From the NCBI GenBank assembly GCA_001643675.2, contig LSRY02000009.1, forward strand, positions 496,001-560,000: a stretch of 64,000 nucleotides of DNA. Reading direction: 5' to 3'. The position numbers and the translations under genes were made by a program. Shown one piece after another: positions 2,418 through 56,092 of the stretch. The notes below the pieces were generated by a model that ran no database searches, was not told where the DNA came from, and was given only the letters and a program-made list of their open reading frames with translations. The stretch is from Monocercomonoides exilis PA203 (Eukaryota > Protista > Preaxostyla). How positions within the stretch are numbered: position 1 is the first letter of the stretch; the number at the start of each line of letters is the position of its first letter.

Positions 2418-2980
2418 AAGGATTGGAAAATATAGTTATTTCATAGAATAGTTGCGATATCATTGTTATCTCTTAGAAAGAAGATTTTATAGTTTTGGCT
2501 TTGAGATGCTGAGAAAGTTTTGCTTGGGAAAGAGGTTAATATTTGCAAAATGTTGAACAAATTAGAATAAATATCTACACTTTTGTAAATGTGGGTTATT
2601 GAAATATTTATGAAAAGGATAAGCAAAAAATACAAAACCAAATCAAATAATGTTATATTAGCATATTCGGCTTTTTGTTTATATTAAATTTTTTATTTCA
2701 AAGAATTTCATCACAACACTTTAAATAGAAAATTACGAAACGCACACTAAACGTATACTTTAAAAAAATTATTTTTTGTCAAATTTATCGTTCTTTCTTA
2801 ATATCCACTTCTGTAACAAATAATTTCTCTAATGACCATTTTTCCTTTTTTAGCAACTATTTCAAAATGAGCTAAATAAATATTTTCTTTCCATTTCTGA
2901 TAAAAAAATGGAGAATAAATCACAATTTTTAAAAAAAAATTATTTCAATTATTGGTGAATTAGAAATGTTTAATATATTT

Positions 2981-3237
2981 GGGTGATTATTTTTGAAATC
3001 ATAACTTTTTTCGGAGTGTTGATTTGTCAAAAGTTAAATTTCTTTAAAGAGGAATTATTCTTTCAAAAGAAAAAAAATCATGAAAAATGTTTAAAACAAC
3101 AATGTTTGAGATTTAAATCAAGTTTTAATTATATTTGAAAGGAGATACATCTTTTCAGTATTCATTCATCATATTCAAAGTGAATTTTCAAACCAATATT
3201 TTTGAATGAAAAAATGTGTATTCAATAATAATCTCCT
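2981..3237 (+). mobile_element. 257-bp MITE, copy 1 (GGGTGATT termini, ATTT target duplication)
   Basis: Starts GGGTGATTATTTTTGAAATCATAAC and ends in degenerate AATAATCTCCT; ATTT on both sides. Same length and similar sequence as 39636-39891 and 55133-55389. Confidence 0.7.
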
Positions 3238-3918: not shown

Positions 3919-4283
3919 ATACAGTTTGTACAAAAATTACCAGACAAGATCGATATCTCAATAACCGCAAGAAGAAAAATTCTGTTTATTTTCCTCAAAA
4001 TATATCTCATCAATTCAAACTCATTTAATATACAAAACTTTCAAAACTTCCTCTTTTTTGCTCTTAGTAATTTTATTATGAATTTTCGGAGAAACTAAAA
4101 ATCCTATTTCTCAGAAATTTCAATCATTAATTATTTCTGAGTGAAAAAGAGGAAAATATGAAAGTTTTGTATATTAAATGAGTTTGAATTGATGAGATAT
4201 ATTTTGAGGAAAATAAACAGAATTTTTCTTCTTGCGGTTATTGAGATATCGATCTTGTCTGGTGTTTTTTGCACAAACTGTAT
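3919..4283. repeat. Foldback/palindromic repeat
   Basis: 3939-4043 is the reverse complement of 4159-4263 (105 bp); degenerate pairing continues towards a centre near 4100. Confidence 0.9.
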
Positions 4284-4455
4284 TTAAAGGAAGGTGCAAT
4301 TTAATATTCCGTAATTCATCAAAAAAATCAGATAAATATTTTTTTTGTTCAAAACAAAAATTTTCCAAAAACACCTATCGAATTTGAAAGTAGACCTTTG
4401 CGACAAGGAAAAATATAGCGATGCATGTCGGTCGAAAGACAAAACCTATGTCGAG

Positions 4456-4457
<2 letters not shown>

Positions 4458-4504
<47 letters not shown>
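4458..4504. repeat. Poly(T) tract inside the hAT element end
   Basis: 47 consecutive T. Confidence 0.9.
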
Positions 4505-4508
<4 letters not shown>

Positions 4509-5042
4509 AAATACAAAATTCAAAATGTGTTTAATTTTTCTGAAATATTTTTCTTATATCTGAATTTCTTTCTGACTTGTATATTCGATATAAATACATT
4601 TATGCATGAACGAAGAAATATATTTAACTTGTTTTGAAAATACCATTTTATGAAATTTCAATCGTGAAAGGAAAAAGCCAACAATAATTATTGAAAACAA
4701 AACAAATTTTTTTGACGAAAGAAGATGAAACAATAACAATAAAATGTTTCAATCAAACCTAAAAAAATAAAAAAATTGAAATACAAAAACAATAGTTCGA
4801 TTAATGAATATATTCAATTTCAGTTTTGATTATAGAAAAATAACAAATAAAGAAAATTGAAGTTATGCAATTTATTTTCGTTATCAACTGTCTGTTTTAT
4901 TATTTTTGAATCTTTAAATGATCCATTGTTGACACTGCCAAATGAAAGTTGCCTTTTGCCTACTATAAAATTGAATTTGTGCATAACAAATAAAATTGGA
5001 CTTTGATGAGCTGAAGCATAAATTAATAATAAAAGTCTATCT

Positions 5043-7875
5043 TTAATGTGAAGAAGAAGAAGAAGAAGAAGATCTGGAACCAGCACCGAGCATGTTTCTG
5101 TTGTTCTTCATCCACTCCTTCCTGTACACTCTGTCAGCGCTGTCGTATGCGACCACTGAAAGAGACTGGACGCGCCAAGCAATGCGGAACATGACACACA
5201 CTTCGGCATGCATCGACGTCCGCTGGCCCCGAACAGACTCGGCTGCTCTTTCAGCAGAACGAGAAAGCTGAGAAACAGAAGGGAGGGATTGAAACACAGC
5301 TGTTGGATGGAGTGACTGCTGTTGCAGCTGAAGCTGTTGTTGAGGCAAAAGTGGATATGATGATGATGATGATGATGTGCTTATTGAAGATGTTGCTCCA
5401 GAGAGAGCTCTGTCGAACGTTTGAGGAGCAAATGAAGAAGAAGAAGAAGGAGAAGGAAAAGCAGATGGAGTGAGTGAGGAAAGCTGATTGTTTCGTGCTA
5501 AGATTTCATAATTTGATGGAAGTGAAGCCTGAGAAGATGGTGAAATAGACGCAGGACGTTGAGGAGGAGGATACGAAGGAGGAATCGATGTTGAGCAATG
5601 AGGTGCAGATGCTGGCGATGGAGAAATTGATCTCATTGGACGGTTGCCTTGTTAATTTGCTGTTTGTTGAGTGTTGTCTGTGATGGGATCAAGAATAGGA
5701 ACATCACGTGTTGCAGAAGGAGCTGCTATTCGATTAAGCGTTAATTGAGAAGCAGAAGGAGATAGAAGCACAGATGGAGTATCAGAAGATTCATTCTTAG
5801 AAGATGAATCATTTGTATTTTCTGTGCTTTCTTTTTCTTCCTCCTCTTTTAATTGTAGTTCTCTTTCTTTCTCTTTCTCTCTCCCTCTCCCTCTCCCTCT
5901 CAATTTCTCTCTCCTTCTCCCTCTGCATTTCGTCCTCAGCTCTCTTCTGCGCATCTGCCAGCACATTAACGGATTGAACATCGACAAACCAGAATGCCAC
6001 CTCAATTTCTGTTCTCGTTATCTGCAAAGCAGCTCTTATCCCCAGCGCCTCCAGTTGCTTCTCATTCAGCAACCGCTGACGCCCCTTTTCCTTCTTCTCC
6101 GCTGCTTCTTTCTTCTGCTTGTCACGAATCTCAGCAAACTTCTTCTCGTCCTGCAGCCTTTCCGCTTCTTCTTCTTTCTGTTCAAATTAAATTAGGCTCA
6201 ACTCAATTTCTTCCTCCTTCATCTTTTCTGCAAGCGTCTTCTTCTCCTTCTTCTGCTTCTGCCTTTCTTGATCTTCCATTATCTGTTGCTCATCCCTCAG
6301 AATCTTCACAATCGTAATGTTTTCTTTGCCTTCCTTTTCCAGATCCAATCTTCTCTGCACACATCGCTCTTCAATCTCCAGCTGTTTCAACTTCTCAGCC
6401 ATTGCTGCTTCCCTCCACTTCTCCTGTTATTTATCTAGCTGCACCTGAATCTTCCTTTCTCTTTCAACCATCCGAACTCTTTCGCTCACTCGCTCTGCTT
6501 CGTGTTATCAGAAACTGTTATTTTTAAACTATTCGTCTTTCGAGTCATCTGCTTGTGCCTATTTCGCTTCTGTTTAGCCTTTGTTCTTCTTGTCGTTGTC
6601 TTCAAAAAATCAGATTAGTAAACAATACATCATCTCCTGCACCTCCCTCCAACCAATTATTTTTCTTGATCTACTATTTCCTATTGATCCTTCAGAAGTG
6701 TTTGTTAATTGCGATTCACAAGATCTCCGTAAAGGAATCCTTCATTCTATTTCTCATGTGCTCGTCTTGTGTCTCTGACTCCATCTCACGCAGATACAGC
6801 ACACTCTCATTCATGCTGCTCGGCATGCCACCCCTCCGCTTGTGGTTGATGTGCGACCAGCTACAGCTCTCTTACTTCCTCCTAACTTTTTTTATTTCAT
6901 TCTGAATCACGCAGTGCCACAAGTCCTGCTGCTGCTTGACACAACTTTCTGTCCAATGACAATCGTGTCCAGCATCCAAAGATATATCGAATCGACGTCA
7001 ACTGAAGCAGATGAAGGTGAAATAGAAGACGATTGCAAAGAGATGAGTACATCGTGTGAAGTGAAAGATGTTATAACATTTGAAATAGTTGTAACAAACA
7101 ATGAAGCTGGAAAACGTGAAGAGGAAGAAGTGAAAGAAGCTGGTGATGAAGATATGCTGCTGTTTTGAGGGGAAGTTATCTGAGGAGGAGTTTGTGAGTT
7201 TTGTCGTCTTGCATCAGTATTTTCTTTCTGTTGCCGTTGCTGTTGTTGTCTATTGTTTGACTGCGAATGTTGCTGAGAATTAAAAATAAAATAATTTTGT
7301 TCTGTCATTTGTGAATTTGCTTCGCTTGATTGTAAAATCTTACCATGAGTGGATAATGGATAGAAAATAGTTGGTTCACGATTTGTTGCGCATGTTGTGA
7401 ATGTGATGCAGATGGTTTTGAAGAGAAAGCATCTGATTATAAGAAACAGCATAAGGATGGGATTGCAGGCTCATCCCAGGGAAATATTGCTAGACGAGGA
7501 AGCTTCTGGAGGAGGTCTGAACTGCAGCTGGAATTTCTGCTGTTTCTGTTGCTGCTGTTGATGAAGCATTTGCATATTTTGGAGTTAGTTTTGAATAGGA
7601 CGAAGCACTTGCTGTTGTTGAAGCTGTGATTAAAACAAAAGATTGGGGCTAACAAAGGTGATGTTCTGGGATGTGATAATGGTGATTGAGGAGAGAGAAG
7701 AAGGAGAAGAAAAATGAATGGAAGGAGAAGAAGAAGGAAGAGAAGATGAATGATAAGAAGTAAGATTGGAAAGAGAAAAAGAGGAAATGTTGGAACAATG
7801 AGAAGTGGAAGAGAATTTTAGAGATGGAAGAAGAGGAAATAAATGAACAGTGAAAAGATCAAAAAGGCACACCAA
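5043..7875 (-). pseudogene. Decayed host-like gene fragment (Ser/Gln-rich and coiled-coil segments) carried inside the hAT element
   Basis: Chain of minus-strand ORF pieces (7630-7875, 7437-7655, 6907-7452, 6187-6402, 5809-6072, 5652-6005, 5043-5636) broken by stops and frameshifts; GC-richer than the element ends. Confidence 0.6.
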
Positions 7876-8506
7876 TAATTTCCCAACAAATTGTTATTCT
7901 TCATTTTCTTCTTTTGCTTTCAATACTAATTCAGCTTTCTTCTTTAAAATCTTTTGAAGTTTCTTTTTCTTTTTCTGATTTCCAGTATCATAATCGAATT
8001 TTAAATGTCTCCAAATACTCGCAGCTTCTTTCTATTTCCATTTGAATGAAAACTTTTTCCACAGGCAGATGTTGTAATAACGCACAAATGTTTGTTGTTT
8101 ATTTCAAATCAATATCATCAACATTGACAATTCCATCAAACTTCTTTTGTTATTCATCGTATTTGATAATAAAACAATTATTTTTGTCAAACCTTTTTCA
8201 TGTGTTAACCTTCTATTTCCACAAATCTGAGTTTGTTATTAAAACTCAAAATGTGTAATTATTATGGAATGTTATTTGAAACTTTTATTTTTGAAAATAA
8301 CGTTAAAAATATTAATATCTGAAAGAAGATGAAATGTTTAATAAAAATGTTGAATTGGACAAATAATGAATTAAATCAGATAGATAAACACTCAATTTCT
8401 TTAAAGAACTTAAAAATATTTCAAGCTATAAATGGCATTTTTAACAAAATTGAAATGAAAGTCAATTTCTGAATAAAAAGAAATGTTTTCAAAAAAATCA
8501 TATCCA

Positions 8507-8572
8507 TTCGACAGATAGATCTTTTCGACCGACTAATCTTTCGACCGACTGATCTCGACAAAGATCTGTCGA
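8507..8572 (-). repeat. hAT subterminal repeats (TCGACCGAC/GATC units), probable transposase-binding sites
   Basis: The reverse complement matches the GATCAGTCGGTCGAATA tandem units at 41369-41428. Confidence 0.75.
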
Positions 8573-8948
8573 TAACCCATTGATATTTTTAAAAATATAA
8601 AAATAAAATATTCGTTTGTTATAATCTTGTGAAAATAAAGAATTAATAAATAAAGAAATTGAATAAAAACGGAAAAACTTAATCTTGTTTTGTTGTTTTT
8701 TCGTTTATCAAAAAATAAAGCATTAGCTGACAGTCTTGTCGGTCGACTTGTCGAGCCATGAAAAAAATGTCGGTTTGTCGCAAAGGCCTATTTGAAAGTG
8801 TTGGAATTGATTGTTTTCAATCTTTGAAACGTGAAAATAAATAATGAACAGTAAGGAATTATTTAAAAATTGTTATAATAAATTTCAAAAAATAAACAAA
8901 AAAAATATATATTTATAAAATTAATATTTTAAAAACTCCTTTTTGCAA

Positions 8949-9020
8949 GCGGTAGTAGTATAGTGGTTAGTACTTCACGTTGTGGCCGTGATAACCTGGG
9001 CTCGAATCCCAGCTACCGCA
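8949..9020 (+). tRNA. tRNA-His(GTG)
   Basis: Acceptor stem GCGGTAG/CTACCGC; anticodon arm TCACG-TTGTGGC-CGTGA; T arm CTGGG-CTCGAAT-CCCAG; downstream T-run Pol III terminator. Confidence 0.93.
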
Positions 9021-12300: not shown

Positions 12301-15300
12301 CTATTGTGAAGCACTCAGTTATATTTAGAGTGTCGATAGAGCCAGCGGCTGGTTCTTCTGCTTCTGCTTCTGCCTCTTCTGCTTCTTCTGATTCTGATTC
12401 TTTGATTTCGCCTTCTGCTGATGGAACTTCCAATAAGTTTCTTTCAGATGAAAAAATAATCGATTCCTCTATTTCTTCAGTCAAACCATCATTTTCATCA
12501 TCGTCTTCTTCTTCTTCTTTATCATCCGCATTTTCCTCTTCTTCTTCTTCATTCAACAGACCCTCCAACCCCGCCTCAGCCACGCTCCGTCTGGACATCT
12601 CTGCCTCCTCCACCTCAGAGCACGAGCTTATCATCACAGGCGCATCAGGCTCTGTGAATTCACTGGAGCTCTCCAGCATTTCTCTGCTCATCGACTCTGC
12701 CTCTGGCTGCTCGCCCAGTCTGAAGACAATCATCTACGTGAATTTCCCGGCAGCTGTGCTGCTAATCAGCAAGTGCCACTTGTCATCGGCTCAGTCCAAT
12801 GCAAATTTTGGTGTTCCTTTCGTCACAGCAGACACAGGCACACTCGAACTGACAGAGTTTGTGTTGAATGCGCAGATGTTTGCGTGCTCTTGCTTTGTGA
12901 TCCGTTCAAATGACCCGCAGAGGTTTGACTCCTGCACATTTGCCGGCAACACACAGGAGAAAGATCCCTGGTTCGTGATATCAGAGCCAATCACAAGCTC
13001 CGTTTCAAACAGAAAACAGCAGAGTTTCTATGATTCCTATGATTCCTATGATTTCTTTGGAAATAACCAAAACTCTCACTCAGAAAGCAACGCAGCAGCG
13101 TCTGTGACATACCAAAACTGCACGATAAACTCTGTTCAGATTCCGAACAGCAATTCTCCCTCATTTTTGTCGACATCGCACCACATCGACCTCAGCCTCA
13201 TCCGCTGCAACATCACAAACACACTTTCTTCTTCATCAGAAGAAGGAGGAGCGTTCAATGTGACGCTGCTGTCAGAAGGGAAAATGACAGTCACAAGCTG
13301 TCTGGTGGAGAACTGCTCAGCGGAGACACACTCGAAAGGGAAAGGCGGTTTTTTGCATCTGCACTGCCTCGCAAACACAGAGCATTTCGTCTTTTCAGAC
13401 GTCAGTTTCGTCGGAAATGCTGCGTTTTTGGGCAAAAACGTGTTTGTTTCGTGCTCGGACTTGAATGAAACAGTGAACGGAATCACTTTCAACTTGGATT
13501 TGTCTGAATGGACGGAAGATTTATTGGCATTTTCTGGCAGCGACACAAAGCAATTTACCACTCCAATTGATCTCCTTTCGTTTCTCATTGATTTCTCGTC
13601 TGATTCTGTTTATGTGTCGCAAAAGGGTTTTGACGTAGCACGGTGCGGAAGCGAAAAACTGCCATGTTCATCGTTTTTCACTGGATTTATCCATTCATCT
13701 GCATATTCTTCACAGAAGAGGACATTTTACTTGGAAATATCGACAAAAGTGGAAGATTCATATGATTTGTCCAACTGTTCCATTGTGAAAAGCGGGGGTG
13801 GAAGCACAGCGTCATTGAACTTGGCCTCAGAAATCGATGGCAATGACTCCACGCCAATCATAACGAACAGTGAAAATCTTCTTCTTGATTCAATTGCACT
13901 GTCTGCTCCAGCAACATTTACGTATGTTCAGAAAGTGCTTATTCAATCAGCATCTCTTTCTGATGGATTGACACTTAATAAATGCTCGTTTTCCGTTCTA
14001 AGTTCTTCTTCTTCTTCGGTTTTTATTCCATTTTCTTTGGTATTTGCAACAAGTGGATTTCTGAACATCACTCAGTTCACATTAGATAAGTCATCATTCT
14101 CAACTCCTGTTTTTATTATCACTCAAATTGTTCAAGCGAACATTAACTCGATGAATGCATCATCAATCACAATTGCCAATGCTTCGTTGTTTGCATTGCC
14201 AGCAACGACAACCGCACAAACAATGAATGCTTTCTCTTCCACTCTGACTTTTGAAAACTGCCATTTTGATTCTGTGAACATAACATCAACCTCAACCACG
14301 TCTTCAGGCACAAGCACAAGCACAGCTCTTTCTTCTCTTATTTCTAACACGCTTTCATCAGCTCTTGTTCTGTCCAACTGCTCATTCCACAGTTGCTGCT
14401 CGTCTTCATGTGCAGAAGGAGGAGGGATGCGTATTAAGTTGGATTCTGGCGGCTCACTCAGTTTGAAAGGAGAATCTGAAAGTGCTCTTTCGGAGATCGT
14501 TTCGTGTGCCTGCTCAGCGTCTGCTGGCAAAGGCGGGTTTTGCTATCTCGAATGCATTGACACGAATTTGGATTTTACTTTTTCAGCTCTCCTTTTCAAT
14601 GAGAATAAAGCAAAACAAGGCAAAAACATGTACATCAAGTGCGATGACCTGTCCAGCGCAATAACAACTTATCGCTTGGCATTCAGCTTGGACAAATGGC
14701 TGAACGACATCAATGGCTTTGTTGGCAGTGACGATGGAGATTTCCCTGCAGACGAGCCAATGGACTTGCTATCGTTCCTTGTGGAGTACTTCAATGCCTC
14801 TATCTCTGTGTCTGCCAGCGGGGTGGACGTTTTGAGGTGCGGCTCACGCTTCATTCCTTGCCAGACGCTGAAAACAGGATTTGCGCACATGCCTAAGGAA
14901 GAAGGGGAGAAGCAGCTGTTAATCACTAATTCGACAACTGTATCGTATCAGTTGGACTTGTCAAACGTGACAATGTGCTCATCCACAAAAGCTAGTGCTG
15001 AGCTTGTTTTTGACTCTTCTCTGGACTCGTCGGACGCAATTGGAGAATTGCTGTCAAATAGCGAAGTTCTTATCTTTGACTGCTTATCTTTCTCTCTTCC
15101 CTCAGTTTTTACTCCACTTTGTGAGTGCCTCATACGTTCTGTGTCTGGCTTACTCAGTCTTCTCTCGTGCGATTTCAATCACAAAGAAGGCGATGAGGAT
15201 CCATTGAACTATTCTTTGGTGAGTGTGGTGTCTGGAACAGTGCTTTTGGATGAAACTATCATTCGCTCTGTCTCTTCTAACACTCCGCTGATGCTGCTGA

Positions 15301-36524: not shown

Positions 36525-37940
36525 ATGCAGGAGGCGGACAACACAAAAATGTTCAATGGTTTGCAATTGTTATTGCAAGTGAATTTTTGCTTATTGCATT
36601 TTTTCTTTGTTTTTTATTGAAGAATTGTTTTGCGAACTGGAAGATTGCGATGAGGAAGATCAGAAACAAAAGGTTAAAGAGCTGCATGTAATAATTGATG
36701 GAATGAATGAGGAAGAATTTAAATCCGTTATCACAAAAGAACTGTTTGACAAAATATACAGAATATTTGAAGAAAAGAAAATTTCTTTGGAAAATGCATT
36801 CATACTGCTAAAGCACATTGGATATTGCAAAGTGATGAAAAATGTTTGGTTTCTTCATTTTGAAGAATCTCCGCTGAGCAAAAGATTGGTAAAGATGATT
36901 AAAGATGGAAATGAGAAAAACGAAAGAATGAATGAAAATTTTCTTGCCAATCTTTGCGAATGCTATCTTTTGCTGAACGATCATTTTGATTGGGAATTAT
37001 TTTCTGTTTGCATTCCCTGCATTCTAAAAGTTGCATCGAACAAAGAGGAAAATGAAGATACTCAAGAGGAAAAGGAAATAGCTTTGCTGGCATTGAGCAA
37101 CATATACGAAAGATATTTAGTATGTGCATTTTCACTTTCTTTTTTATGCCTTCACTTTTTATAATTTTTTCTTATTAGTTTGTGGATAAAAAATTGTATT
37201 TGAATGAGATAACAGAAATAATCCAATATCACCAGGAACACCACAATCTGACTCGGCTTGCCTATCAATCTGCTTGGCATTTTTTGTATTGCAGATTTTG
37301 CAAAGACGAAAGCTTGAAAGGTATAGTTGTGAATGAGCTGCATTTCGCGAGAGAAGCCAGAAGAGAACTTGAAGAACTGTCGAAATGTATTGACTGGAAG
37401 AGAAAAGGAGGGGAGGAAGGAGAAAAAGAAAAGAAAGAAATGGTCATTATTATTAGATGGTTGACGATATTGGGGTCATATTTTTTCAGATACGGATTGC
37501 GAAATGAAGAGCATTTTGGACTTATTGGCAGTATTATGGGAGTTCTTCGAGCATCAAAGGAGAATTATAAAAGAATTTACAAGATATGTATTGATTCATT
37601 GAGCAAAGCAGCGAGAAATAGAGCCTTGAAAGTTGATGACTTTTTGAGCATTGGGGCTGCTGACTTTGTTTTGGAGGTGGTTGCTCAATCACATGTGATC
37701 AATATGCAAACTTCGGACTGTTTGGATTTTTTCAAGATCCTTTGCGAAAGATTGAGAAGCGAAAGAGAAATAGAAAGCGATAAAGCGAAAAGAAAAGAGT
37801 TGAAAAGAAAAGTGCTTGATAAGTTAGAGGAAGAAGGATACGAAGATTGCATCATCGGGCTTCACTGTTGCATATTTGAAGATCCAATAATTGACTTATA
37901 TTTGGTTCGATACATTGATGATTATCTTGTTTATTGCTGA
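36525..37940 (+). CDS. Lineage-specific multigene-family protein ('YHQEHHNLTRLAYQSAW...EEEGYED'), paralog 1, apparently intact; introns 36559-36622 and 37120-37178; start approximate
   Basis: The GT-AG introns join ORFs 36607-37164 and 37182-37940 in frame; clear similarity to the paralogs at 38432-40085 and 52070-53548. Confidence 0.75.
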
Positions 37941-40853: not shown

Positions 40854-41032
40854 TATTCACACCATATTTCTATGCGCAACAATCTTTGGCTATGTATTTT
40901 GAAGAGCAGAAACCTTTTATAAAATATGTTTGTTGTAATGGATGTTTTGATCAAGAAATTTTTTTGTTCAAAAATGTCATTCTGCAAAATTTAATAGAAG
41001 TGAATGAATTTGTCTTTTTGAATTATTAATTG

Positions 41033-44000
41033 TCAACCTTTGCGACAGACCGACATTTTCCAATATGTTCGACAAGTCGACCGACAATGCAAAATATTTC
41101 TGCAAAAATTAATTTTGTTTTCATTTTTTTATTCGTTTTTTCTTATCATAGTATCTCTATTATTTGATTTTTTAAATAGAAAAACAAACAAATCAACAAT
41201 TCTCTTTTTTTGATGGAAATGAATAATTTAATAAATTTTTACTAATATGAATTTGATTTTTCATGGTTTCGAAATTAAAAAATTATCAAAAGTCCATGAA
41301 AAATAACTTATTGTCCTTTTTTTGATGAAAGATTTTGTATTTTTCACTTGTTTCAAAAATTCATTTTTTCGACATAGATCAGTCGGTCGAATAGATCAGT
41401 CGTTCGAATAGATCAGTCGGTCGAACGGAAAAATTGATTATTTGATAGATATCATGATACAATTAATAACATATGAGGATTTTTTAAGAAGCTTGCCTTT
41501 GGAATTACAAAACAGTGCAAAATCAAAAGAAATCGTTTGAATTTTACATAATTCAAATTTTGACAGAAACTTTTTTATTTCTTTTTTTTTTTCAAAAGAG
41601 TGCTGCATTAAGCAAAAAAATAGAAGAGCTGAAAAAAAGTGATTGTTCATTTGTTGAGTTGAAATGTTCAAAATCAACAAATTTTGGAAAATGTTTGATT
41701 TTTTCCAGTTTTGATCAAAAATTATATCATTTCATTTGTTGTGATTATTATAAAGTTTGCAGGCATCCTAATTACACTGGAGAAGATATAGGAAAAGTTC
41801 ACTTTGAAATTCAAAAAAATTCAGTTTGGATAACTTATACGCCTGTGAAAAATGATGGAACATTGAAAAAAGATGGACATATTTATTATTTGTGTCCAAA
41901 CAGCAAAGAAGGAGTTAATTGTGGAGTTTCCGGAAGAAAAGGATGTGATCGAATAATTAATCATCAATGTCCCCTTTTGACATATTCATCAATCGTCATA
42001 TTTATGAAGCAGGATCATCCTCTCAAACAAGCAACTTATTACTCAAATAAAAATGAGTTCCATTTCATTTTCAATATGATTTATTGAAAAAACAATTTTT
42101 GAGGTTAATTGGACATTGTAACATTGCATTTTTGTCCGCTTATTCATCTGAGTTTAATAGTTTCATTTCTTCTCTTATACAGATTTCTCAACAAAATCCA
42201 TCATTTTCTCCCGAAACCATATTTCCCACATTGAATTACAGAAAACTTTCAGCAATAATTCATGACGAAGTGGAAGGTGCAATTAAAGAAAGGGATGCTG
42301 CAATTTTCAATTTTTCAGTCGGTATAATGATTGACGGTGGAGTAATTGCGGGCAAAAAGTACACGGCTGTAACTGTGGTTCCGTTGAATCCAGGTGCAAA
42401 GCCAATGTTTTATAAATTAGTTAAAGTGTGCTACACTTCCTTTGATTATTCGCAACTTGCAGTCCAAATTATAACAGAAATAAAAGATATACACGGAGAA
42501 GTTCGGTGTTTTTGCACAGACGGCTTGCTTCCTCAGAAGCTTGCAATTCAGAGCCTTTCAAAAGAAACCACAACAGCAAAATCTTTGTCATTTTACAAAG
42601 GAACACCACCAATTTTTATTTATTTGTAGCAACCATTTATTAAACCTAGTTGTTTCTCATTATTTCAAAAACAACGAATTCTTTCGAACACAGAAAGATG
42701 CAATTATTTCATTTACGAAACAAGCGAAGGTGATTTCCCGAAGGCAACCCTCAACACCAAAATGCCCTTCTTTCATAGAAACAAGATGGCTTTACATTTT
42801 TGATATTTGTTTTTTTATTAGAAATCATTTTCATGATAATAGTTTTTCAAAATTGCAGGAATTGGTTTTTATCGAAAATGTGATCAAATGTGAACTTCTA
42901 TTATTTCCCTTAAGAGAACTTCAATTGCAGTTCGAAAAAGATGAAACAAAGTTGGGAGATGTGTTCACTCTGCTGGTGAAAGCATTTGCTCGCTACTCAT
43001 GGATGCAGGACCTTGAAGAATTCTCAGAAGAAAACTGGCAATCTGGTTTATGTGATATTATAATCCTTTTGTTTAATTTTTTTTTGCAGGTGATAGGGGA
43101 AACCTGATCTCTATGGCCTTTTCATTGACTCCTGGAGGGAGAAATAACTATCAATTGGGTTCTTTTTCTGAGTCTTACAACCAAGAATTGAAAAGGCTGA
43201 AAGCGAAATACGAACTTGTTTTTCGTCGTGAAACATTGGATCAAACAACGATACACTCGGAATCAGAAACAAATCAACAAAACTTGATTCAAAATACTTC
43301 TGAAAAAAGGAATCCATTTTGCACATTTGAGCAATCAAAACATATGCCATCCGCTTCTTTTTCGTCTTCGTCATTCGAATCCTTTTTCGATTCCTCCCCG
43401 TCGTCTTCATGTTTTTCTGATTCTTCATCAAGTTCGCCTTCAAATTCAACATCAAATTCACCTATGAACGTAGGACAGATTTCATCAAATCAAGTAATCG
43501 ATTATGATCTTCGAACAAATCTCTTCGAAAAACGACGTGAACGAAAAAATAAATTATTTTCGAATACCTCGAAACAAATCTTTGAGTCCAGAAGTCCAAT
43601 TGATAGCGATATTTTTGAAAATAAATTATCATTCGATTTGCCTTCTTCTTCGTCAACATACTCATTTAACCCTTTCGCAATTGATTCGTTTTATTCAGCA
43701 CTTCAGTCACTTAATCCATCACTCTCTGATAACTCAAATAAAGACTCATCCATCATTCCTCCGTCAAATCAGTCTTCTTCAGCCAAAGTTATTGAAAAAA
43801 AAGAAAACTCATTTCCAGGATATTCTCGAATTGTTCAACTTCTTCAAATAATCGAAGAAAACTCTTCAACAAAATGTGAAGAATCTTCTTTTAAACATAT
43901 GGGGGAAACAGATGAAACAGATGAAGATGAATATGGACTATTGCAAGCCGAAAGCGATTCTGAGGAAGATGAATATACTGAAAAATCAGAGACTTCTTCG

Positions 44001-44600
44001 TCAACAATGAAAGAAAATGTTTTTCACAACACTCGTAACAAAAGACGAAAAGAAAATGAAGATTGTTCTGAAGAAAAAGGAAAAAATGAAACGGATGATT
44101 TGGATGATGATGAAGAAAAGAAAAATGAAGAAAATGAAGAAGATATTGTTTTCATTGGTTCAAATGAACAAATTGAAATTGGAACTCTAAAAAATTTGGA
44201 GCAAAAAGTTAAAGAAACAAGAAAAATCCAAGAGAAAATTAATATGGACTTGTTCATAAGAATGAAAAGTGGATTTCATGGTTTCATATCAAAAGTGTTT
44301 CGATACCAAACTGAAAACTTCAAGGAAAAGCTAGAAGCTTTGTATTCTTCATTTCTTCTTGATTGCCATCAATCATATCTACAGAATAATTTATTTGTTT
44401 TGTTTTCAGAAATTTGCAAATCTGGCATATTTCATTCGATATTTTCGAATGTTTGTTTCGCCTTGGCTACGTTTCCGTGCAGCGAAGCTTCTTGTGAGCG
44501 CCTCTTTTCTCGACTTCGACGTATTGTTGGGGATAGGAGACACTCTCTTTCTTTAGAAACTCTCAATAATTTACTTTTTCTTTAGTTTTTTTTTTCATTT
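41033..44600 (+). mobile_element. hAT-superfamily transposon: 5' end plus transposase gene; 3' TIR not found
   Basis: Degenerate terminus TCAACCTTTGCGACAGACCGAC...TCGACAAGTCGACCGACAA; subterminal 17-bp tandem repeats at 41369-41428; transposase follows. Confidence 0.8.
41454..44585 (+). pseudogene. hAT transposase with three frameshifts (intron 41535-41598)
   Basis: BED-like Cys/His finger (LCPNSKEGVNC...IINHQC), IMIDGG, FCTDG, CSNH, ETRW and C-terminal dimerisation motif PCSEASCERLFSRLRRIVGDRRHSL; frame changes near 42075, 42620 and 43085. Confidence 0.85.
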
Positions 44601-44978
44601 TTGTTCAATTAACATGCTCCTTTGTTATGAATCATATCACGCTTTTATATAAAAAGCTAAATCTTTTTTTGAAAATTTGACAATTATGACTTTTAACTTC
44701 ACATCTCCATAAGTTCAAAAACAAACATTTTTTTGATGTTAAAGTTGAATTTATTTTTTGATATGATGCATTTTCAAACAAAAATTGTGAACATTCTCTT
44801 ATCTGCTCATTCACGAACAGCATTTCCCTGCAAAAGCATATGTTAACAATTTATGACGTCACTCAAATGCTGACTTCCTCATCGATTTTCTTAAATATCT
44901 ATCTTCCATCTTCTTATTAGTAAAACTTTTGATCATTCCAGCAAAAAAAGTTATAATCCTTCAACTGATTGAAAAACT

Positions 44979-47900
44979 TCAAATTTTCTTAACTTCTCTT
45001 ATAAATTCTTTCAAGATGTCACATGTTGAACATCTCATGCGTATTCCATGAATCCATTTTGCACGCTTCCGCTTTTTTTTGCATAAATTTGATATTTCCT
45101 CCAAGCTAATTGCATCTGATACAGTAAGAATTGTCATCCCTTTTGTAAAATGAACAATAAATTCTCTCTTTTGATTTTTCAAGCTCAATCTTCCTTCAGA
45201 ATAGTGCTGTACACATGATTTCTCAATCTCTTTCATTGAACTTCTTTCAATCTTAATCATATCTGGCCTTTCTCCTTTTTCAATCTTGTCTCCAGCAATC
45301 ACAGCGTCGTTCTCACAAAACTGTATCTAATGTGTCATGCACTCCCACAGCATCATCCCGATTGAGAATGAAACTGACTCCTTTGTTGCTCCCATCTTCT
45401 TGTTGATCAGCAACTCAGGCGCCTTCCACCTCAGGCGCTCTTTTTTGAAATAATCTTCATCCTCAAAGGCAGAAGAAGGGAGAGAGTCACTATCATCATC
45501 ATCGTCTTCGTCGCTTGCAGATGTGACAACAGTTGACGAAGAGATGGAGGATGAATCTGAATCATCTGATAAAAGATCTGAATGCATCACAATGCAGATC
45601 ACCATGTGCTCTGAGAACAGCACAATGTGAGGGATGAGGTTGGCAAGAGATGGAAGAGGATTGTCCATTTCGTCAGATGAGTGCAGTGCTCCATTCACCA
45701 CCCAGAACAGGATCTGAGCAGCTGTCATCTCTCTCTCCTGAAGAGTGCCTATTGCTATCTCTTTCTTCTCGTTCCTTCCATGCAACAACATGAACAGTGA
45801 ATCCCTCAGATCCACAATCAGCTTTTCGTGAGGAGATGAGCACGCTATTGCATCCACCAGATTCGACATGGATGAGGTGGTCGGGCACAGATCCTCACCT
45901 CGGACAAATGTTGAATCAGAATCAGTTGTTGAAGTGGATGAAATGGATGGAAATGGAGTCTGTTTTCTAATTTCCTCATCATCAACCTTCTCCAATGCCC
46001 AATCAGGAATCTTATCTGAATCTTTCCTCAGAATGTATTCAGTCGATCCACTTTCAGATAACAAATACTCTTCAGACTCCGAATGCACCATCTCCTTTCC
46101 ATTTATTCTTTTCTTTATTATCTCTTCGCTCTTCTTCTCTGCCTCCCTCTCAGCTCTCCTCTACTGCTCCTCTGGTGACATCTCCATCGTCACTATCTCA
46201 ATCGGCTTCGGATCCTTTTTGATATTATCATCAACAATCTCCTTGTATTTTTTTGCTTCTTCTTTTGAATTTCTCCATCGAACAACAAATATTATCAATG
46301 CAATTAATAGTACAACAACAATTGCAATGCAAACAATCAATAACCAATATGATTTCCCTTCTTTTCCTCCTTCAACAATCCTTTCATTTCCATTCGCCTT
46401 TGTTTCACTTGTATTCTTCAGAATGAATGAATTTGTTGAGGAAGGAGAATCAGCTTTTCCAAAAAGGATGCACATGCTCACTTCTGTCTCGTCTCTCACT
46501 TTCTCCAATTCTGAAGATGAAATAATTGAATGGATCTCATTCTCTGACACACAGTCTTCTTCATCAATTCCTTTTTTCACGATTTCCTCTTCAACTCCTT
46601 CTTTCATGTTTATCTTTGCTGACAAATTGCATGGCAGAAGCAACTTCCCATGAATGATCAGTTCTTCATCCCCATTTGGCTGAGAAATATTCTTCACTTC
46701 TTCCAAAACAGGGATGAAAAATGATGATCCTCTTTCTGAAGCTATCCCTCCCAATTGACATCCCTCGTCTAATATCCACAACGATGTGTTTGGCAACATT
46801 CCATCTCCCCCTTTCACACTCACAACATCCAATTCACCATTCCCTTCACAAATCACATTCCTTCTGGCTGATGGATATCCCTCAACAGATGGCTTGTTGT
46901 TTTCAAACATACCATTTTCAATCTAGGTGCTCCCTCCACTCACCCACAGCCCACCTGCCTTGCTATTTCTGATTGTTGTTTCCATCATCTCCACATAGCT
47001 GTTCTCAATATCAACCAATGACCCATTCCATTTGCACAATCCTTCTTTTCTATTGTTTTTTTCATTGACTATTTCATCTTCTCTTTCTCCATCAAACACA
47101 CACACCTCAATCCTCACATTCTTTGAATTCCCGATCTGCATCATGCTTCCCTTGTTCACCGAATTCTCGCATTTTCCAAACGAGCAGTACAGCACGCTCA
47201 CCTCTTGCTCAGCTTCTTCCATTCCGATAGCACACCCTTCCGACAGAACGCTCACATTTTCAATAACCATCTCTTTCATTTCCACTTTCGCTTTGCCTCC
47301 CACCATTACCACATCGCTTTCACATTCAATGTTTGTGATGATTGTCTCAACCACTTCCACTTTTGACTCTTCACAAAATGAAAGCACTTATGCTGATGAA
47401 TGAAGATTCCTGAATGCTGAATCAAATATCCTCAGCTCTCTTCTTTCCACACTCACAACTGAACTGTTCACTTTTTATTCAGTTTCGGTTGTACAGAATT
47501 CACATTTTTGTATCTCCATTGATCCGTCCTTCACTTTGAAATGATAAAAGTGAGTTGCTTCAAATCCATCTTCAAACTCGAATGAGCACTTCTCCACAGC
47601 GATTTCATTCACAAACTCCATGACGCAATCATTCTCTGCTGATTTTTCAATATCCGATTTCAACTTCACAATCGCTTGGGAATTTTTGAATGAATTCACA
47701 TTCAGATCCCCAATCACACAGTCGCCAGAAACAACTCCTTCTCCGTCAATCAGAATCGCATTCATCACACCTTGCTCAATGTGGTCAATCCCACAATTGA
47801 TACTGGAACAAGGATTGGTCTGAGCCCCACATCGTCTGCCATCCGCCCCTGACCCGTTCAAAAACACTTGAAGCCCATAAAAGAATGTTATCAGCGGAAT

Positions 47901-56027: not shown

Positions 56028-56092
56028 TAAGCCTTTGCAACAAGAGATTTTTTTGATTTATGTGTCGGTCAAAGATGATGTGCAATATCGAG
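56028..56092. mobile_element. Solo relic of the hAT terminus seen at 4391
   Basis: TAAGCCTTTGCAACAAG...TGTCGGTCAAAGA...TATCGAG is co-linear with TAGACCTTTGCGACAAG...TGTCGGTCGAAAGA...TGTCGAG. Confidence 0.55.

Follow-up and report, generated by a model that had tools for sequence, protein, structure and literature searches.

Positions 4391-8790 of the 64,000-nucleotide stretch of Monocercomonoides exilis PA203 DNA analysed here (the window) are very probably a copy of a non-autonomous hAT transposon family, in which a VPS13-like host gene fragment of about 2.5 kb occupies the position of the transposase gene. The unit is a real Pack-hAT; it belongs to a family of 30 or more copies and is itself decayed. 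Its cargo is by now a dead pseudogene fragment, interrupted by 12 in-frame stops and 7 frameshifts. The features of this unit, and of a related hAT element further along the window, are as follows.

4383-4390: left target-site duplication (TSD) TTTGAAAG, identical to 8791-8798
4391-4406, plus strand: left terminal inverted repeat (TIR) TAGACCTTTGCGACAA; this '...GCGACAAGG' end is the 3' end in the orientation of the autonomous relatives
4391-5049: 3' backbone arm, AT-rich and non-coding, with poly-T at 4458-4505 and one GTCGGTCGA at 4427
5043-5636, minus strand: relic open reading frame (ORF) of the cargo, 197 aa, 100% identical over 197 aa to a public protein (P0002) with no name listed
5050-5072: left capture junction within a (GAA)n tract, seen on aligning the window with the donor, with type B elements, and with further copies of the cargo
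5050-7573, minus strand (sense is the minus strand of the window): captured VPS13-like fragment, 81.5% identical to the donor, its frame interrupted by 12 stops and shifted by 7 indels
7574-7895: orphan segment, purine-rich and of low complexity, kept among the cargo copies (matches reach query position 2823)
7896-8790: 5' backbone arm, with GTCGGTCGA at 8525, 8541, and 8738, common to type B elements
8775-8790, minus strand: right TIR, reverse complement TAGGCCTTTGCGACAA, the counterpart of the family's '...GCGACAGAC' end
8791-8798: right TSD TTTGAAAG, identical to 4383-4390
41025-46277, plus strand: distinct though related hAT element with 86% identity to the autonomous L032, about 13 stops in the transposase frame, and its 3' end missing
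45327-46091, minus strand: kinase-like ORF in the element at 41025-46277

The left and right TIRs matched at 15 of 16 positions and started with TAGACC... and TAGGCC..., respectively, which fits the (T/C)A(A/G) rule for hAT elements, and the perfect 8-bp TSD lay directly outside both termini. A first, sequence-only reading of the window had reported these TIRs and the exact 8-bp repeat, and both were present when the sequence was re-read. The TIR core CCTTTGCGACA, with at most one mismatch, occurred 6 times in the window, compared to 0.85 expected. The subterminal motif GTCGGTCGA occurred exactly 7 times (4427, 8525, 8541, 8738, 41077, 41382, and 41416), and all 7 occurrences were within hAT ends. 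The arms had a GC content of approximately 0.22-0.27, compared to 0.36-0.51 for the interior. The 3' arm showed 59-64% identity over approximately 700 bp to the matching end of the elements here called type B (L021-L027 and L039) and was colinear in the other cargo copies; the 5' arm showed 63-67% identity over approximately 940 bp to L021-L027. Since no transposase was detected in 4391-8790, either by tblastn with four intact transposases of the family (best E 0.69) or by tblastx of the arms, which matched the TIRs only, the element is considered non-autonomous.

The end at 8790 had also been read as co-linear with the 5' end, at 41033-41428, of the hAT transposase element. This was borne out at the TIR with some 50 bp next to it (82%) and at a subterminal-repeat block of about 120 bp (70%), and the likeness did not extend beyond them. 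By these alignments, the real backbone relatives of 4391-8790 are the TIR-sharing type B elements of 5.1-5.4 kb elsewhere in the genome. Neither tblastn for a transposase nor a Pfam search of the interior gave a match in the type B elements, and their interior had partial matches of 63-69% elsewhere in the genome. C58:1470239-1471135, C32:721943-723587, C80:1902323-1903046, and C42:9867-10588 are candidate donors for type B. Open transposase frames of 900-984 aa were present in many places in the genome. The Pfam search of the family transposases reported Dimer_Tnp_hAT (PF05699) as the only domain, in L028 (924 aa; E 3.1e-5) and in L036 (900 aa; E 1.7e-4), both of which share the terminus; in the window, 43113-44585 matched it with E 3.1e-4 and 20.9 bits, just under the cut-off of 21.4 bits.

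Pairs of the Ac/Ds type consist of hAT elements that have short TIRs starting with TAG, short subterminal repeats, and 8-bp TSDs; derivatives whose interior has been replaced must rely on a transposase provided in trans. The unit at 4391-8790 is alike in its TAG termini, its subterminal GTCGGTCGA repeats, its 8-bp TSD, and its replaced interior. In contrast to Ac/Ds, its similarity to the intact autonomous elements found here is confined to 15 terminal bp and some subterminal stretches, and type B, its nearest relatives in backbone, lack a transposase themselves. After capture, the element would have been mobilised in trans by transposases of autonomous relatives with the same 15-bp terminus, and elements of the L036 type, with intact frames of 900-901 aa, are candidates for this source. 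The source is proposed from the shared termini alone, since no autonomous element with the same arms of 700-900 bp was found in the genome.

The donor of the interior was located at C2:662495-665065, which aligned with window 5050-7573 as one colinear block with 81.5% identity over 2575 bp. This stretch lies in a giant VPS13-like gene, within a frame that stays open for 1781 codons, the captured part coming from exon 2, and it is the single closest relative of the cargo copy in the window. An intact parental gene without TIRs, which the sequence-only reading had proposed to look for, is thereby found: TIRs, transposon arms, and a TSD were sought at the donor locus (L019), and none was present. 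The interior read earlier as host-like, 5043-7875, keeps this character for 5050-7573 and loses it for 7574-7895. This orphan segment had no counterpart in the donor gene or in the type B elements, and elsewhere it gave low-complexity matches only. The donor stretch lies in a part of its gene that is rich in low complexity. The genome also contains a second VPS13 gene, and one cargo copy is located 1.5 kb from it.

At the left capture junction, (GAA)n was present in the transposon backbone and in the donor gene alike, where it encodes poly-Ser on the donor minus strand; the right capture junction was in a (CTG)n tract at approximately 7545-7573. Since both junctions are in trinucleotide microsatellites, and (GAA)n is common to backbone and donor, the capture probably occurred by template switching during the repair of an excision gap. 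The microhomology at the junctions lies in low-complexity repeats and could be coincidental. The capture took place elsewhere than at this locus.

A different route to the same composite starts from two hAT ends that inserted close together and flanked a copy of the VPS13 segment, the outer ends being then mobilised as a unit. Such a model of neighbouring insertions has been proposed for plant Pack-TYPE elements, and in maize an excess of local hAT insertions in the same orientation is described where the acquisition of new DNA by Pack-TYPE elements is treated (PMC8903248), which speaks for it. Moreover, the orphan segment at 7574-7895 might have been left behind by such a composite, and the cargo copy 1.5 kb from the other VPS13 gene would agree with it. 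We nevertheless regard this route as unlikely. Both junctions are in microsatellites, and both fall within a single exon of a gene that is intact and looks essential; two insertions there would have broken the donor, barring a duplicate. In addition, the arms are long and colinear with a backbone family that already existed. Template switching is the route that we prefer.

The donor gene was further characterised by its protein matches. PF12624 (VPS13_N) matched the exon upstream of the captured part (L019:5326-6204, minus strand) with E 2.4e-22, and with its neighbours included the match reached 81.3 bits, over the cut-off. Positions 326-370 of the VPS13_N profile were inside the captured donor stretch and followed the VPS13_N exon in the correct order. 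Furthermore, VPS13 proteins of Blattamonas nauphoetae, including KAK2954739.1, aligned in the same order with three blocks, two of them within the captured part and the third immediately upstream of it in the same frame. Pfam searches of the donor's downstream 3333-aa frame and of its thirds, where the later VPS13 domains (repeating region, VAB, C-terminal) would be expected, gave no matches, the gene being very divergent and its exons having been searched singly. The donor stretch had 0 stops in 856 codons. Since the captured part aligns with VPS13 of another oxymonad, Blattamonas, the comparison of these sequences gives the direction of transfer as from host to transposon.

The reverse, with the interior being original transposon sequence which the VPS13-like gene on C2 gained by insertion and exonisation, is very improbable. 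The C2 stretch is indeed the closest single relative of the window copy, and it lies in the low-complexity-rich part of its gene. However, a former insertion should not hold VPS13_N positions 326-370 in the right order behind the VPS13_N exon, nor two blocks colinear with Blattamonas VPS13 and in frame with a third conserved block just upstream. Nor does it agree with the lack of transposon arms, TIRs, and TSD on C2, or with the decay of all transposon copies when C2 is open over 856 codons with a third-position excess of differences. Finally, each copy is less distant from the donor than it is, on average, from the other copies. Transfer from the host gene into the transposon is the reading retained in what follows.

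In the genome, at least 30 TIR-bounded copies carried the same VPS13 fragment, and the layout of arms plus cargo recurred elsewhere at 20 or more loci, all of them with TSDs of their own. A single-copy cargo, or termini that were parts of separate small elements, would have spoken against the earlier reading; neither is the case. The cargo copies were 76-83% identical to the donor and, on average, 71-77% identical to other copies, every copy being nearer to the donor. Stops and frameshifts were present in every copy, with 6-25 stops per copy. Differences between copies were even over the three codon positions (670:747:715), and those between copy and donor were enriched at position 3. On these counts, the transposon-borne copies appear to evolve neutrally, while the donor stayed open. 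Root-to-tip distances of the copies ranged from 0.23 to 0.43. We infer one old capture, after which the unit was amplified to 30 copies or more; the tree has one outgroup sequence and, taken alone, would also fit two very early captures out of the same gene.

The family has moved after capture, since two copies (L008 and L009) were 97.7% identical exactly from TIR to TIR and had different TSDs and unrelated flanks. A genome-wide search for TIR pairs with 8-bp TSDs, suggested by the sequence-only reading, returned 151 termini with YARNCCTTTGCGACA, mostly as facing pairs, compared to 0 for the reversed-pattern control. The TSDs were scored on 32 TIR pairs fetched from among these termini: 22 of the 32 had perfect 8-bp TSDs, 4 more had them after a 1-bp shift, and the TSD sequences varied between pairs. 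A chance origin of the inverted termini and of the 8-bp repeat, or a spread of the copies by segmental duplication, is extremely improbable against these termini, TSDs, and the L008/L009 identity ending exactly at the TIRs, even with the short flanking similarity of L002/L004 and L026/L027 and the two copies in the C53 inverted duplication on its side. The earlier claim that the whole unit was inserted here as one piece agrees with the TIRs, the TSD, and the same composite at other loci.

Some pairs of copies, L002/L004 and L026/L027, share short flanking similarity, and on C53 two cargo copies are in an inverted duplication. At the window copy, a separate palindromic repeat makes up the left flank and stops approximately 100 bp short of the insertion, the sequence to the right is essentially unique, and a search for an empty site through paralogous flanks found no related site.

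The case resembles the plant Pack-TYPE elements, including maize Pack-hAT (PMC8903248) and Pack-MULEs, which are likewise non-autonomous, have TIRs typical of their superfamily and an 8-bp TSD, carry host gene fragments in the interior with the gene intact elsewhere, and were mobile after capture. It differs in the host, an oxymonad protist, and in the cargo, one long fragment (2.5 kb from one exon) here and mosaics of short exon and intron pieces in plants. It differs also in that one capture has been amplified to at least 30 copies, now diverged by 17-30%. In Dothideomycete fungi, hAT-mediated transduplication of histone H3 has been described (Dhillon et al. 2019, PMC6710886). There, as here, host coding sequence was captured and is present in many copies, all inactivated, and purifying selection has kept the original gene intact. 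However, the fungal cargo is a whole small gene carried by a complete hAT element, and its decay is driven by RIP, whereas the cargo here is an internal fragment of a giant gene in an element with no detectable transposase, and its decay resembles ordinary neutral drift, the differences being spread evenly over the codon positions.

Gene capture of the Pack type is a known kind of event, and the present case is in the oxymonad Monocercomonoides exilis. Capture by TIR transposons is documented for plants, for fungi, and for C. elegans (PMC2572040); the present case extends this range, as far as those sources describe it, to a metamonad protist. A limited literature search returned no report of such capture in protists. 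The case is unusually clean, as the donor is identified, the direction is given by another genus, and the timing is readable from neutral decay. The sequence-only reading had spoken of a route for duplicating and shuffling host gene fragments; the duplication of a fragment is upheld, with the donor kept and at least 30 copies made, and the claim is now limited to it. The window copy taken alone is, we infer, an old, dead insertion without protein function, and no cellular function is expected of it.

The M. exilis genome contains 35% 'unclassified repeats', and its protein tyrosine kinases overlap repeats (PMC8767320). The present results suggest that a part of this large fraction could be hAT-related. 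An ORF for a tyrosine-kinase C-lobe is present in the autonomous elements of the L032 type, among them the copy at 41025-46277 of the window, and a weak kinase-like one in elements of the L028 type. Both the 5.4-kb type B family, which was active recently, and the 9.4-kb elements of the L036 type contain kilobases of DNA that is unidentified and does not belong to a transposase. It is conceivable, if rather doubtful, that the hAT elements of M. exilis are serial gene-capturers, with the kinase ORFs and the type B and L036-type interiors as further cargo beyond VPS13. If all of these were captures, hAT transduplication would explain a part of the unclassified repeats and the overlap of tyrosine kinases with repeats (PMC8767320).

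For the annotation of M. exilis, at least one 'hypothetical protein' (MONOS_8623) is a relic ORF of a decayed VPS13 fragment in a transposon, and the same origin applies to several further short proteins predicted in the public collection. It is likewise conceivable, if rather doubtful, that the approximately 30 VPS13 fragments give rise to RNA, sense or antisense, which acts on the donor gene. RNA runs contained 14-27% of the sampled words of window 4200-9000, counted as words and not placed by position.

The sequence-only reading had described a 4.4-kb hAT unit at 4391-8790, with terminal inverted repeats (TIRs) agreeing at 15 of 16 positions and an exact 8-bp direct repeat beyond them, and both were read directly at the two ends. 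The parts of the unit and the donor locus are listed below (window positions, unless a contig is named).

4383-4390 and 8791-8798: target-site duplication (TSD) TTTGAAAG, directly beyond both TIRs
4391-4406: left TIR, reading TAGACCTTTGCGACAA
8775-8790: right TIR, reverse complement TAGGCCTTTGCGACAA
4391-~5070 and 7896-8790: arms, 59-67% identical to both ends of the type B elements (L021-L027, L039; 5.1-5.4 kb)
5050-5072: left junction, a (GAA)n tract in which backbone and donor sequence overlap
~7545-7573: right junction, a (CTG)n tract in which donor homology fades
7574-7895: purine-rich, low-complexity segment, kept across copies
C2:659974-665316, minus strand: donor frame on contig C2, 1781 uninterrupted codons, containing the block that matches 5050-7573

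The TIR core CCTTTGCGACA was over-represented in the window (6 matches vs 0.85 expected), and all seven exact occurrences of the motif GTCGGTCGA in the window fell inside hAT subterminal regions. Across the whole genome, the terminus pattern YARNCCTTTGCGACA was found 151 times (78 forward, 73 reverse), mainly as facing pairs spaced by 3.3-9.6 kb, and the reversed-pattern control gave 0 matches. Of 40 terminus-pair loci retrieved, 32, including the window, had both termini recognised. The search for TIR pairs with 8-bp TSDs that the reading had proposed found perfect direct repeats directly outside the termini in 22 of these 32 pairs; four more had a perfect repeat once shifted by 1 bp, and one had a one-base difference. 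The flanking repeats were not the same between loci. Therefore, on the basis of the TIRs, the TSD, the genomic termini against the empty control and the placement of the motif, the observation is real and the unit is a member of a large hAT family. Other degenerate termini of hAT type, all with a single mismatch to the TIR core, were seen at 56032-56072, 13615-13625 (minus strand) and 37739-37749, the first being followed by a near-match to GTCGGTCGA. A palindromic, MITE-like repeat of about 365 bp (3919-4283; self-match on both strands, 88%) stops about 100 bp short of the insertion, and it recurs at more than 40 other genomic loci (77-85%, both strands).

The interior at 5050-7573 matched C2:662495-665065 as a single colinear block, with 81.5% identity over 2575 bp. 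No hAT terminus was found within the C2 locus, which thus supplies the intact parental gene without TIRs that had been proposed as a check. The donor exons were profile-searched one by one, unjoined. An exon upstream of the donor frame matched Pfam VPS13_N (E 2.4e-22), profile positions 326-370 fell within the captured stretch, and downstream lies another open frame, at least 3526 codons long. A PF12624 scan of the whole genome found only two genes, the donor on C2 and one on C67. About 1.5 kb upstream of the latter (G000:C67:184632-190289) lies a VPS13-cargo copy in head-to-head orientation (L013, G000:C67:179265-183042), a proximity for which a rough estimate puts chance below 1% (given about 30 copies across 82 Mb).

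The donor piece (941 aa) was used as query in an exhaustive HMMER search. Besides short relic ORFs of M. exilis, the hits were two long proteins from the oxymonad Blattamonas nauphoetae, one bearing the annotation VPS13 N-terminal (2227 aa) and the other VPS13C (5790 aa, with VPS13_N present). In BLASTP, the donor piece matched the 2227-aa protein in three blocks with their order kept. The first block lay just upstream of the captured part, and the other two lay inside it (59 aa at 44% identity, E 2e-12; 337 aa, E 9e-11). These colinear blocks show that the cargo is ancestral VPS13 sequence and that the transposon was the copier, the transfer going from host to transposon.

The cargo is not single-copy: at least 29 more long copies of the interior occur in the genome (68-82% identity), and at least 20 of them have colinear arms on both sides. 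In an alignment of the donor with 20 copies from transposons, identity to the donor (76-83%) exceeded the mean identity to the remaining copies (71-77%) for each of the 20. This is the expectation for a single capture after which the copies decayed neutrally and independently, given a slowly evolving donor. In a maximum-likelihood tree rooted on the donor, root-to-tip distances were 0.23-0.43, the window copy being the shortest (0.23). Differences among the transposon copies were even over the codon positions of the donor frame (670:747:715), and third positions were enriched in copy-versus-donor differences. In-frame stops numbered 6-25 and frameshifting indels 3-11 per aligned copy (12 and 7, respectively, in the window copy), and the donor had neither over 856 codons. 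Moreover, the VPS13-cargo unit moved after capture: copies L008 and L009 are 97.7% identical, bounded exactly by the termini, with unrelated flanks and different TSDs (ATGAAGAT vs GTTTAACA). Another two copies of equal score, inverted and about 3 kb apart (G000:C53:492158-496120 and C53:499224-503187), have the look of a palindromic segmental duplication and not of two independent transposition events.

The (GAA)n tract of the left junction also occurs in type B elements, and in the donor it encodes poly-Ser. The junction pattern fits microhomology-guided template switching, by which the VPS13 fragment would have been captured while an excision gap was repaired. Template switching in gap repair is among the models proposed for Pack-type elements. 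Alternatively, two adjoining hAT ends may be mobilised together with the host DNA between them (PMC8903248); this is less likely, because it needs two insertions within a donor exon, yet the exon is still intact.

The backbone has its closest counterpart in type B, which has TIRs and both arms in common with the VPS13-cargo family. The co-linearity claimed with the window transposase element (41025-46277) held for the TIR plus some 50 bp and for a repeat block of 120 bp, and did not extend beyond these. Type B copies reach 99.6-100% mutual identity, and therefore a transposase acting on these ends was recently active. Examples with perfect TSDs are G000:C36:1141272-1146655 and C36:1152781-1158195. 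The type B interior (about 3.7 kb) gave no transposase or Pfam match; partial matches of 63-69% lie at C58:1470239, C32:721943, C80:1902323 and C42:9867.

No transposase remnant was detectable in the 4.4-kb unit (best tblastn E-value 0.69; tblastx matches at the TIRs only). Open frames 900-984 aa long occur in elements with the same terminus, and Pfam finds the hAT dimerisation domain in two of these frames (L028, E 3.1e-5; L036, E 1.7e-4). Many frames of this type, of several subfamilies and a number of them stop-free, are present in the genome. The most plausible transposase source for the VPS13-cargo family is the L036 type, whose 900-901-aa frames are intact, whose 15-bp terminus is the same and whose 5' arm is 61% similar. 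The window transposase element shares 86% identity with L032, an autonomous element, but its frame is interrupted by about 13 stops and its 3' end is missing.

Some copies contain relic ORFs with 100% matches to short predicted public proteins:

L014:2082-2552
L015:2071-2370
L009:1790-2071
L003:1809-2216 and 2756-3001

Among the matched proteins is the NCBI M. exilis hypothetical protein MONOS_8623 (KAH7819414.1). Since these proteins represent relic ORFs left in transposon copies by decayed VPS13 fragments, they are likely annotation artefacts. RNA runs contained 14-27% of the words sampled from 4200-9000, a share that carries no position within the stretch.

Pack-TYPE elements, Pack-hAT among them, have been described in maize and rice (PMC8903248). 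In fungi, a hAT captured and amplified histone H3 (PMC6710886); as in M. exilis, the amplified copies are all dead and the original gene is intact. The M. exilis genome paper gives DNA transposons only in bulk (4.5%), with 35% unclassified repeats (PMC8767320), and in a literature keyword search no reports of them turned up for Monocercomonoides or any other protist, where "them" means gene-capturing elements of this kind. Therefore, the M. exilis case is a further instance of an already known kind of gene capture.

The 9.4-kb L036-type elements (L036-L038) have about 5 kb of additional DNA, whose ORFs of 200-330 aa gave no Pfam match. One VPS13-cargo copy holds a 5.3-kb insertion (L004:4322-9662; G000:C2:1086594-1091934) with only the head (aa ~8-225) and tail (aa ~777-924) of a distant hAT transposase (~30% identity), and the edges of the insertion showed no recognisable family TIRs. 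Downstream of and opposite to its transposase, the L032 type has a 302-aa ORF (L032:4313-5218, minus strand) whose match to PK_Tyr_Ser-Thr (E 9.2e-8) is confined to the C-lobe. The ORF may stem from a second capture of a host gene, independent of the VPS13 one and with a bearing on the kinase/repeat overlap reported for the M. exilis genome. The same kinase-like region is present in the window transposase element (ORF 45327-46091, minus strand). The L028-type autonomous hAT has a second ORF of 347 aa (L028:1050-2090, plus strand) with a weak Pkinase match below the cut-off (E 6e-4).
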